Below are positions 45,428 through 53,575 of a stretch of 64,000 nt of DNA, one piece after another. Made by a program: the position numbers and the translations under genes. The stretch lies in contig NC_047028.1 in the NCBI RefSeq assembly GCF_902652985.1, forward strand, positions 30,752,001 to 30,816,000, given 5' to 3'. Origin of the DNA: Pecten maximus (Eukaryota). The notes beneath the pieces were generated by a model. It saw only the letters and a program-made list of their open reading frames with translations. It did not search any database and was not told the DNA's origin. How positions within the stretch are numbered: position 1 is the first letter of the stretch; every line of letters starts with the position of its first letter.

Positions 45428-45470
45428 ATGGAACCTGGATCTGCTGAACCAACAAAAATAGCAGTGTCAG
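45428..45470 (+). CDS. Coding exon 1 (MEPGSAEPTKIAVS); the exon starts at 45390 with 5' UTR
   Basis: Acceptor tgtttgcag|45390, donor cag|gtatta at 45471, phase 1. Confidence 0.7.
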
Positions 45471-51400: not shown

Positions 51401-53575
51401 AACAAGTGAAATTTAATGGGATTGATAAATGGGGTTCATTTTGTGACCAACTTTAAGTAGAGCATTCATAAATACAACAGTACTCTATTATTGTTCCTTC
51501 AGGTACGGTACGAACAACTAAGTCGAAGGCATCATCAAGGTTGATTATAGACAATCAGAAAGAGATACCGACAATGATTATGAAGATGAGGGTCTCCGAT
51601 ACCTCGGATATAATCACTACACTTGATCTGGCTCCGCCCACAAAAAAACTGATGAAATTTAAGGAGACAGAGGCCAGTAAAGTCTTCACTGTACCCGGTC
51701 GTAACCTCACGCCTCGATTGGCGTGGCCGGTAAGTAAACTGTGGTCACCTTACCACAGTCGTAACCTCACGCCTCGATTGGCATGGCCGGTAAGTAAACT
51801 GTAGTCACCTTACTACAGTCGTAACCTCACACCTCGATTGGCGTGGCCGGTAAGTAAACTGTAGTCACTTTACCACAGTCGTAACCTCACACCTGGCCGT
51901 AACCTCACACCTCGATTGGCGTGGCCGGTAAGTAATCTGTAGTCACCTACCACAGTCGTAACCTGACGCCTCGATTGGCTTGGCCGGTAAGTAAAATGTA
52001 GCCACCTTACCACACTGTATACTGTATATCTTATATGTATGCATCAATATCATTAAATTTCCTTTGTGAAATATTTTTTTAGTCAGCATCATGACAAGGA
52101 GTGGAAGAGTTATCTCCCTTTTGAAAAGGAGAGTCAACATTTCTGGTGATCACTAAATCTGTTAAGATTAAGATTTAGATTTAAGAACATTTTGAAACTA
52201 CAAGCTCCTGTGGAACTTAAATCTATGAGCCATATTTTTTATCACTTTATGGATTTTCTTTACCTTGAAAGCAAAAATATTAAAGAATAAATTGAGAATA
52301 AAGAGATGAATTTTGAAAGTATAATCGTAATTTGTTAGTAAAAAACGAGTCTGAAATCCTGCTCTGTTTTATCCCAGTGAACTAAACCCAATCAGTGGGA
52401 ACATCCAACATTATGTATTATCTCTACAATTTCCAGCTATTTTACCCAAACCTGTTGACAAAACCCAGGGGAGATGACTCTGATGATGACGACGATGTTA
52501 TGGGTGATGATGTACCTGCTGAGGACGAAAATCTTGACGGTCAGAAGAAATTTACAATCATTCGCAGTGAACCCTTAAACATGTCTGACGGGGAAGACAA
52601 TATTCACTGTAAGTACACTGAAAATGCGAGTGATGACTCGCTGGTTACACAACTAGCTTTAGATCTGATATTATCAGCCAAAGGGCTCATCTACTGTAAA
52701 CGTGGTTATATTCCCGGGCGATGTTAATTTCGCGATTTCGATATGTAAACTATACGCGTTGGGGTAATTTTCGTGATTGATCCATCTTTGTTTGTAGTTG
52801 GAGATTATGCAAATTGATATCAAAATATAACACTTTGGGAAATGTTCGCGATCAAAAGGACTCCATGTAATTAGCGTAAATTTTCCCCTTGCGTCAAACA
52901 TAACGTTTACAGTATATCTTTTTATAATTTTTTGTTTGTTTTGTAGATACGAATGTTCTATCAGACGAAGACGACGACATTGCTGAACCTATCTATGCAG
53001 AACCACAGACCAGCCTAACTGACGAAGAGAATAAAGTTGACGACAGCAGTGTAGGGAAAGTTTCCGAGGATACCAGTGTAGACACACCTCCAGTTATAAA
53101 ACCGGAGGGGACGACTGATAAAAACCAGCCGAATTCTGACTCTGTACAGAACCCTTCACCAGACCAGGTACAACCAGTTAAACCAGAGACCGTTACTTCA
53201 CAAACCGTTCCCACATCAGAAGAAACACCACTTGTCGTACAAGGGGATATTACTACAGTTACAGTTCCGCCACAACCCGTAACAAATAGTTCAGTTAGCA
53301 ATACGGCCGCGGAAAACATCAGAATGGACACATCAGTTGTAGACATTTCACTGACATCTGTTAATTCCGGTCAGACAATGACAGATTCAGCCATCGTGAA
53401 CCAGGCGTCCAGCATCAGTAGCAATGCAGAATCAACAGAGGAAGGTTGTGTCATTGTGTCCGTGGTTACCGAAATATCAGAACCGTACGTTGAGCAAGAG
53501 GGAGAAATCATGCTTCAAACAGACTCCGCAAATAACTCGAGTGGGGACCAATACATACTTTATGTAGAGAAATGA
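45428..53575 (+). CDS. Spliced gene, ~776 aa, Rad21-derived protein containing only the central STAG/SA-binding kleisin segment; join(45428-45470,46118-46228,47740-47934,48833-49033,49793-50545,51503-51729,52437-52608,52947-53575)
   Basis: Manual assembly. All 7 introns are GT..AG, intron phases 1,1,1,1,1,0,1 join without a stop, and the total is 2331 nt. ATG 45428 is in aagATGg context with an in-frame TAA upstream at 45392; stop TGA is at 53573-53575. The sixth coding exon matches the Rad21 STAG-binding region as I recall it. Confidence 0.82.
45518..45707 (+). mobile_element. SINE family A copy (intronic, internally deleted)
   Basis: ggggccgcagtggccgaatggttaagg head; ggttttctccgggtactccg core. 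Confidence 0.8.
46118..46228 (+). CDS. Coding exon 2 (DNQNKKGETIDVAVAEQDDKEATTPVKAGQNTAEFQQ)
   Basis: tttttttgtag acceptor, aag|gttggt donor, 111 nt, open in phase 1-1. Confidence 0.72.
46469..46690 (+). mobile_element. SINE family A copy, near full length
   Basis: tRNA head, ctccgggtactccggctttcctcc core, (aaac) tail. Confidence 0.85.
46771..46995 (+). mobile_element. SINE family B copy
   Basis: gtggcacagtggtaac A box, ggtttgattcc B box; colinear with 27410-27665. Confidence 0.8.
47180..47706. repeat. 33-bp intronic minisatellite (gtgaagttcatgtacccatacagagtctaccct), ~16 copies
   Basis: Direct periodicity; ends ~35 nt before coding exon 3. Confidence 0.95.
47740..47934 (+). CDS. Coding exon 3, acidic (ESPTTVIAIIGEDEDGE...DSRVKK)
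   Basis: ctaac branch-like site at 47722, tttcag acceptor (alternative in-frame cag giving a 47734 start), aaa|gtatgt donor, 195 nt. Confidence 0.8.
48275..48847 (+). repeat. 45-bp tandem array made of a 3' splice site plus the first ~15 exon nt, 13 copies
   Basis: AG at 48291, 48336, 48381 ... 48831, spaced exactly 45 bp. Confidence 0.93.
48833..49033 (+). CDS. Coding exon 4 (KKSYEFFYPDMVSTLELALRG...FAKEAKK)
   Basis: ttttgttttcag acceptor, aag|gtattt donor, 201 nt, phase 1-1. Confidence 0.8.
49793..50545 (+). CDS. Coding exon 5, Lys/Pro-rich, with a 9x 11-aa repeat and a FALEP motif
   Basis: tttcag acceptor, aag|gtaagg donor, 753 nt; matches ORF 49795-50592. Confidence 0.88.
50056..50345 (+). 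repeat. Coding 33-bp repeat (VTPQAVAKQPK / VTPQAVTTQPK), 9 copies
   Basis: In frame within coding exon 5. Confidence 0.95.
50663..51227 (-). mobile_element. HINE-type element (intronic)
   Basis: Reverse complement 5' ACAAGAGATCCCAGAGGGATC..GCCCACCG; two ~155-bp internal units; (gacg)n; 3' hairpin TAGCCCAC..GTGGGCTA followed by an A-run. Confidence 0.82.
51503..51729 (+). CDS. Coding exon 6: Rad21/Scc1 STAG(SA/Scc3)-binding domain homolog
   Basis: Encodes [89 protein letters not shown] (51616-51654) is identical to human RAD21 as I recall it. ttccttcag acceptor, ccg|gtaagt donor. Confidence 0.92.
51698..52012 (+). repeat. 60-bp tandem array made of an exon end plus 5' splice site, 5 donors
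   Basis: CCG|GTAAGT with GT at 51730, 51790, 51850, 51928 and 51987. Confidence 0.93.
52437..52608 (+). CDS. Coding exon 7 (LFYPNLLTKPRGDDSDDDDD...EDNIH)
   Basis: ttccag acceptor, phase 0; continues the Rad21 alignment (LFYPNLLT vs LFTRCLT); act|gtaagt donor. Confidence 0.85.
52694..52912. mobile_element. Tc1/mariner-like MITE (TA TSD) filling most of the last intron
   Basis: TA|CTGTAAACGT...ACGTTTACAG|TA. Confidence 0.7.
52947..53575 (+). CDS. Terminal coding exon, acidic and S/T/V-rich, ending ...GDQYILYVEK*
   Basis: tttgttttgtag acceptor; 629 nt open in the phase required by the previous exon; includes ORF 53324-53575. Confidence 0.85.

Follow-up and report, generated by a model that had tools for sequence, protein, structure and literature searches.

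Alpha-kleisins carry an N-terminal helical domain (Rad21_Rec8_N, PF04825) that binds the neck of SMC3, a C-terminal winged helix (Rad21_Rec8, PF04824) that binds the head of SMC1, and a central stretch that binds Scc3/STAG. Here we analyse a 64,000-nucleotide (nt) stretch of the scallop Pecten maximus (assembly GCF_902652985.1, contig NC_047028.1, positions 30,752,001 to 30,816,000 of the forward strand; hereafter the window, whose own numbering is used below). It contains LOC117342314, a gene coding from 45428 to 53575, which by its sequence and exon borders is a remodelled rad21 paralogue: it keeps a STAG/SA-binding-type stretch and has neither SMC-binding domain. Its product probably engages STAG outside the cohesin ring.

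Described systems offer several points of comparison. In Drosophila, UNO is physically associated with the STAG paralogue SNM in the alternative homolog conjunction complex of male meiosis, away from SMC1, and has no recognisable kleisin end domains; it is cleaved by separase at a functional site, and a kleisin origin was suggested by the authors (PMC7529252). The scallop protein also lacks both end domains and, unlike UNO, has no conserved separase site; we set it beside UNO by description. Whereas the kleisin descent of UNO is only argued, that of the scallop protein is visible in sequence and exon structure; a dedicated STAG paralogue comparable to SNM was not detected in the scallop genome. 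A second comparison is with CTCF, SGO1 and, as proposed, MCM3, which are YxF ligands of the composite STAG-kleisin surface (CES; PMC10279526). The scallop protein shares with them an aromatic-x-Phe motif ([YF]EF, the core of the pattern only) in a disordered region, and it carries a kleisin-like stretch, which these ligands do not. Finally, STAG is reported to have ring-independent functions in human cells after RAD21 loss (PMC10238091). The idea of STAG on chromatin or RNA without an SMC-kleisin ring is the same as the one considered here, but no dedicated kleisin-like partner is described in that work.

A first reading of the window from its letters (the sequence-only reading) had described a stop-free, phase-consistent eight-exon coding sequence of about 776 codons, with an in-frame stop upstream of the start. 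Both descriptions hold. All exon borders are AG/GT, the 2331 nt comprise 776 codons and a stop, and the whole spliced model is identical to P. maximus XP_033760324.1 (776 amino acids, aa), the product of LOC117342314; in a phmmer search of 1.84 billion representative proteins, the exon-6 peptide was 100% identical to its residues 436-510. A possible splice acceptor lies at 45389/45390, 5' of the upstream in-frame stop. The parts of the gene, all on the forward strand, are as follows.

45392-45394, forward: in-frame TAA, 12 codons 5' of the ATG in the same exon; the translation of 45380-45469 reads LFAA*KKRRIIYTVTKMEPGS
45428-45470, forward: coding part of exon 1, residues 1-14 and the first base of codon 15, with a GT donor; agrees with the N-terminus of XP_033760324.1
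46118-46228, forward: exon 2, AG/GT borders; its 3' end is read as the loose end of a contig before 47732
47740-47934, forward: exon 3, acidic, with the conserved block IIGEDEDGEAIDMSDIRVLEDLDTENKSPEKEE; joint 47934>48833 in two runs
48833-49033, forward: exon 4, the best-conserved block of the protein; both joints in contigs
49793-50545, forward: exon 5, strongly basic (net +37, isoelectric point 10.7), with K, P, T and V abundant; joints in contigs
51503-51729, forward: exon 6, 227 nt, the rad21-derived STAG/SA-binding-type stretch, residues 435-510
51595-51654, forward: core of exon 6, residues 466-485, most positions the same as those invariant in animal Rad21
52437-52608, forward: exon 7 (phase 0 in, phase 1 out), in which an acidic run separates LFYPNLLTKPR from FTIIRSEPL..EDNIH
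52947-53575, forward: exon 8, acidic S/T/V-rich tail with the conserved blocks YTNVLSDEDDD, DTSVVDISLTSV and EEGCVIVSVVTEISEPYVEQ..YILYVEK; joint 52608>52947
53573-53575, forward: stop codon TGA, the end of exon 8
53576-53649, forward: start of the 3' untranslated region (3'UTR); a contig runs at least 605 nt further, unspliced

The three RefSeq isoforms span 767-778 aa: X1 uses an acceptor at 47734, 6 nt upstream of 47740, which adds Val-Ser, and X3 shares the added Val-Ser but is missing 11 residues, as many as one exon-5 repeat unit encodes. The sequence-only reading had also held that no protein of this architecture was described. We found no paper carrying any of the gene or protein identifiers in a literature search by identifiers, and to that extent the statement stands; RefSeq and UniProt entries do exist, under uninformative or wrong names, so the gene is not unseen. 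The NCBI name of XP_033760324.1, "cytadherence high molecular weight protein 1-like", evidently stems from low-complexity sequence.

The descent of exons 6 and 7 from rad21 can be followed both in the protein and in the gene. A HMMER search with the exon-6 peptide gives E 6e-16 for the RAD21 fragment in the SA2-SCC1 crystals (4PJU, 6QNX, 7ZJS and others), with an alignment to human RAD21 residues 312-380; a hand count on this alignment gives the same 26/43 gapless identities to residues 324-366 that had been reported from the letters. When the four scallop orthologues were aligned to nine Rad21 proteins with hhalign, residues 446-548 of XP_033760324.1 corresponded to Rad21 333-438 with a probability of 99.6%, and nothing else aligned. 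A genome search with the exon-6 peptide matched only the peptide itself and one exon on C18 (59% identity), which is part of a separate, canonical rad21 whose N- and C-terminal Pfam domains lie at C18:28429034-28440092.

Compared exon by exon, exon 6 and its canonical counterpart are 55% identical (E 1e-27), both are 227 nt long with phase 1 in, phase 0 out and 75 full codons, and both begin inside a Gly codon, after its first base. The next exon starts LFGRNLITR in canonical rad21 and LFYPNLLTK in the window gene, in each case with phase 0 in and phase 1 out after ..H, and the last exon is long and acidic in both. The two genes thus share a homologous central stretch (55-59% identity), like exon borders and phases, and an acidic linker after the stretch. 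Exon 7 and the canonical exon are not significantly similar by BLASTP alone (E 1.1), and we take exon 7 to be homologous to rad21 because of the profile alignment and the shared intron; weak rad21-profile matches of exons 7 and 8 are collinear with Rad21. The shared intron positions and phases, together with the profile match, argue for a genomic duplication, and for neither a retrocopy nor a convergent mimic; the word "mimic", which the sequence-only reading had used, is therefore not borne out in its convergent sense. On this evidence the gene is a remodelled rad21 paralogue, derived from a duplicated genomic copy of rad21 or, at the least, of its final exons. A FALEP motif was set aside as evidence of descent, as it is found at residues 372-376 in P. 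maximus only and is missing in the three orthologues.

Neither kleisin end domain could be recognised by Pfam, hhalign or a six-frame profile scan of the window, in agreement with what had been read from the letters. No Pfam family was found in XP_033760324.1 or P0002 even at E<=10. Searched across the 918-Mb genome, PF04825 gave matches on C18, C12, C5 and C10 and none in or near the window; PF04824 gave none near the window, its sole match on C14, where the window lies (20.62 Mb, E 6.6), being non-significant and ~10 Mb away. We also ran a full-length Rad21 profile (hmmsearch --max) against every open stretch in six frames of the 64-kb window. Exon 6 matched at E 1.7e-25, exons 8 and 7 gave weak, collinear linker matches (E 1.1 and 11), and there was no match near the gene to Rad21 profile positions 1-110 or beyond 600. 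As the sequence-only reading had expected, the Rad21 profile matches the middle and no end domain. Exon 8, correctly described beforehand as an acidic S/T/V-rich tail, contains no winged helix. Judged by these searches, the protein cannot close an SMC ring by known interfaces.

Two other kleisin loci came up in the genome searches. C12:6845514-6861634, on the reverse strand, has weaker N-domain and C-domain matches and is likely a Rec8-type kleisin, and C5:30323611-30324503, also on the reverse strand, has a weaker kleisin-domain match. Neither matches the STAG-binding peptide of the window.

Within the rad21-derived stretch of ~100 residues, nine Rad21 proteins from bird to bivalve have 40 invariant columns; the four scallop proteins all keep the Rad21 residue at 24 of these and have conservative changes at 5 others. 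SCC1 residues S334, I337 and L341 help form the CES pocket that receives the YxF of CTCF and SGO1 (PMC10279526). Their equivalents in the scallop protein are T458, M461 and V465, and at the second of these positions Met is likewise found in canonical scallop Rad21; compared with canonical Rad21, the CES-pocket residues are kept or conservatively changed.

Outside this stretch, the strongest conservation is in exon 4, whose block K-S-[YF]-E-F-F-Y-P-D-M-V-S-T-L-E-L-A-L-R-G-L-P is more conserved than the Rad21 stretch itself, with 95% invariant columns over residues 121-140. The [YF]EF at 48841-48849 (residues 120-122) is the sole conserved [FY]xF in the protein, has an invariant pattern and lies in a region predicted to be disordered. 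The genome contains no paralogue of exon 4, the libraries searched gave no relative, residues 55-215 gave no usable match in the ESM Atlas, and the five upstream exons have no detectable relatives in the libraries searched. The charge layout is kept in the four species: exons 1-3 are acidic (net -21), exons 4-6 are basic (net +6, +37 and +7) and exons 7-8 are acidic again (net -12 and -31). The prediction for the protein as a whole is intrinsic disorder, with short blocks of conserved sequence.

We hold with moderate confidence that this rad21-derived protein, having no SMC-binding ends, would bind STAG outside the ring as an adaptor or a sponge, and that its [YF]EF may dock on the CES. In this mechanism the Rad21-type stretch would bind STAG in the manner of Rad21. 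Since the genome has one clear STAG locus (C14, ~2.41 Mb), Rad21 and the Rec8-like kleisin would be its competitors for that STAG. The resulting STAG complex would be excluded from a closed SMC ring. As an adaptor, the protein would use its basic middle and its other conserved blocks to tie STAG to chromatin or other partners; as a sponge, it would withhold STAG from cohesin. The two roles are not exclusive, and we favour an adaptor over a pure sponge since there are many strongly conserved blocks outside the Rad21 stretch. It is more speculative that [YF]EF of exon 4 might dock on the CES, either of its own complex or of the cohesin complex.

Several observations weigh against this proposal. 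An AlphaFold2 monomer built with the four-sequence alignment has a mean predicted local distance difference test (pLDDT) score of 35.6 and a few short helices, and is informative only as to disorder. Eleven of the 40 Rad21-invariant positions are changed in all four orthologues, with a concentration in the KRKRK patch, at W363 (to F or L) and in GGVE, and these substitutions could weaken or redirect STAG binding. Of the published YxF pattern, [YF]EF reproduces only the core, and motifs this short can be due to chance. The contig evidence presented below concerns splicing, not expression level, tissue or timing.

The same 11 replacements fit a different account, in which the rad21-derived stretch has switched partner, for example to another HEAT-repeat protein, and has no role in cohesin. 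The tree of a 125-column stretch is also compatible with such a switch: the four scallop proteins form one clade (100/100), whose stem exceeds 2 changes per site and whose inner branches are short, as if rapid change had been followed by a slowdown, and the rest of the protein is unlike any known cohesin factor. Yet the core and its flanking hydrophobic positions, the most conserved ones in animal Rad21, are nearly unchanged, which would be difficult to account for if that surface were no longer read. We therefore regard a partner switch as unlikely, though it is the alternative that survives best. The tree does not fix the position of the clade among lophotrochozoan Rad21 proteins (a sister relationship to scallop Rad21 is compatible, approximately unbiased test 0.34), so the duplication cannot be dated. 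Path length in the STAG-binding-type stretch is 0.24 as against 0.02 in scallop Rad21, about 10x faster.

Less probable still is that the protein remains a subunit of the cohesin ring, its novel N- and C-terminal blocks binding SMC3 and SMC1 in a non-canonical way, as has been proposed for very divergent meiotic kleisins. These blocks are conserved among scallops, and highly divergent kleisin-like proteins such as SOLO are under discussion in Drosophila (PMC7529252). However, neither end shows profile similarity to an end domain, and both are predicted to be disordered, not to form a helical bundle or a winged helix. The separase site points the same way. The consensus [DE]xxR (as cited in PMC7529252) occurs 0-1 times per protein and is nowhere conserved across the four orthologues, and in a hand alignment the ExxR of canonical scallop rad21 stands opposite E-P-L-[NDS]-[ML]-S of exon 7. 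By this comparison, the conserved separase consensus is lost in the scallop protein, which differs from canonical Rad21 in this respect as well as in its missing end domains and its lost KRKRK patch. Binding of STAG outside the ring remains the reading that we prefer.

The family is known only from scallops. Using XP_033760324.1 and the family alignment as queries, a word-indexed search of 5.8 billion proteins returned the following orthologues.

Mizuhopecten yessoensis LOC110464584, 746 aa, UniProt name "rad21-like"
Ylistrum balloti LOC132557464, 814 aa
The protein of a transcript contig from run SRR19746223, 658 aa

All remaining word-indexed matches were ordinary Rad21, and in phmmer the E value drops from 3.8e-27 directly to the Rad21 level of ~1e-15. 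Nine matches picked for short length or an N-terminal motif each had at least one kleisin end domain. Among the 1.84 and 5.8 billion sequences of the two protein searches, orthologues were found in scallops and none beyond them. Three other candidates proved to be fragments of ordinary Rad21: P0059, a tenth match picked on the same grounds, and P0184 and P0185, in which Pfam recognises no domain. A fourth protein considered as a relative, P0003 (2694 aa, 12 stretches), was a false positive consisting of ~200-residue tandem repeats without a Rad21-type motif.

The orthologues have a common exon structure, and per-exon Nei-Gojobori ratios of nonsynonymous to synonymous change (dN/dS) against P. 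maximus are 0.06-0.13 for exon 4, 0.26-0.36 for exon 5, 0.11-0.12 for exon 6, 0.10-0.14 for exon 7 and 0.31-0.46 for exon 8, where dS of ~0.7-2 is near saturation, so that the ratios are rough and their direction is clear. Exon 6, for which neutral values would have spoken against a function, is thus not neutral. These ratios indicate that the gene is under purifying selection, which is strong on the rad21-derived stretch.

It could still be asked whether the gene is a transcribed rad21 duplicate in decay, without function. The protein is largely low-complexity and disordered, and it contains a species-specific coding repeat: in exon 5, Tandem Repeats Finder reports a 33-nt (11-aa) unit in ~9 copies at 50062-50350 (PKVTPQAVAKQ/PKVTPQAVTTQ), which is expanded in P. 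maximus only, the orthologues having 1-2 units. Against decay, the frame is intact in four species despite dS near saturation, dN/dS is ~0.1 on three exons, the exon structure is conserved, and splicing is seen in several studies. With an intact frame, dN/dS of 0.06-0.46 and spliced contigs, the gene does not look like a pseudogene, and the selection and conservation data contradict the idea of decay, which we consider very improbable. As to the repeat itself, contigs differ at many sites within it and isoform X3 is short of exactly one unit, which suggests copy-number or allelic variation.

Conservation also extends upstream of the gene. The Mizuhopecten and Ylistrum loci contain a conserved, collinear counterpart of an element at 43307-43519, ~2 kb 5' of the ATG, equally far from their own start codons. 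The element may be a promoter or a non-coding first exon, the latter being possible because of the candidate acceptor at 45389/45390. Flank synteny by tblastx was mostly noise, with only this element in common, and a 119-aa tblastx match at 37771-38127 was discarded because it contains stops.

To follow splicing, transcriptome contigs of four runs from four studies were aligned to 47650-53649. One of the four runs is recorded as RNA and the other three are presumed to be; since the contigs lack introns, they come from spliced RNA whatever the run annotation. Coverage lies on the exons, and GT..AG joints are seen in contigs for exons 3-4, 4-5, 5-6, 6-7 (first donor) and 7-8. The gene is thus expressed, and contigs from all four studies agree with the exon model. 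For the joint of exons 2 and 3, a loose end before 47732 carries the last 30 bases of exon 2, and the joint of exons 1 and 2, which lies 5' of the aligned stretch, rests on the RefSeq model. One contig of 1772 nt joins exon 5 to exons 6-8, includes the stop and continues for ~680 nt of unspliced 3'UTR.

Neither these contigs nor the three RefSeq isoforms (767-778 aa) include a transcript that joins the exons to kleisin end domains. It is scarcely credible that the model is in error and covers just part of a longer kleisin gene with its end domains elsewhere. Nothing was found in favour of this, although the joint of exons 1 and 2 is seen in RefSeq and not in contigs. Against it, the in-frame stop precedes the ATG in the same exon, a contig reads on from exon 8 past the stop for a long 3'UTR with no splice, all three isoforms are of similar length, and no kleisin end domain occurs in the 64-kb window or on the nearby chromosome.

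The end of exon 6 has been multiplied in P. maximus. Tandem Repeats Finder reports ~5 tandem copies of a 60-nt unit at 51698-52014 (forward strand), each consisting of the last 34 nt of exon 6 and a GTAAGT donor. After exon 6, only the first of these donors is used in the RNA contigs (joint 51728/9>52436/7). The Mizuhopecten locus has a single copy of the unit, and all P. maximus copies map to that one place. Use of the second donor would add 20 in-frame residues, and later copies run into a stop.

Repeats occupy much of the introns. Introns 2 and 3 are mostly tandem arrays, of 33 nt in 16 copies at 47176-47706 and of 45 nt in 13 copies at 48263-48847, the latter reaching the exon 4 acceptor and bearing a TTTTTAG-like acceptor look-alike in each unit. 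In intron 5 (50650-51250) and intron 7 (52650-52850), contig depth rises to thousands to tens of thousands in four runs, with many irregular joints; these stretches belong to high-copy repeats whose transcripts come from other genomic sites. At 50748-51101 there are 2.2 copies of a 159-nt unit. A short interspersed element, ..GGCCGCAGTGGCCG.ATGGTTAAGGTGTCCCAACAC.., is present twice, at 45490-45610 (intron 1) and 46460-46640 (intron 2); the element looks like a tRNA-derived SINE and explains an open reading frame listed over the start codon.

Two features elsewhere in the window are of a different kind. At 62162-63061 on the forward strand, an intronless open reading frame of 299 aa encodes two C2H2 zinc fingers (Pfam zf-C2H2, E 3.6e-8) and is unrelated to the rad21-derived gene. 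Over ~4 kb at 16000-20000, GC skew is +0.44 to +0.60 and AT skew is negative, probably reflecting a strand-biased simple or satellite repeat.

The reach of these findings is limited so far, in that these proteins are known from a single bivalve family only. If STAG binding is true, the protein would be a natural separation-of-function kleisin, one that binds STAG without ring closure or separase control, and there would be an animal in which the debated ring-independent roles of STAG could be tested directly. The design of STAG-binding research peptides could then take the stretch, with its fixed substitutions, as a guide. The protein would further show, by sequence and exon structure, a route by which cohesin parts enter non-cohesin complexes, which for UNO-SNM is conjectural. 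For scallops, it is tempting to speculate, and we put this forward tentatively as somewhat short of an even chance, that they have a dedicated kleisin-derived partner holding STAG in a complex without SMC proteins, a counterpart to SNM-UNO that can be traced in sequence, whose [YF]EF and basic middle would occupy the STAG-kleisin surface or tether STAG to chromatin or cohesin, and which may in this way regulate the supply of STAG to cohesin.

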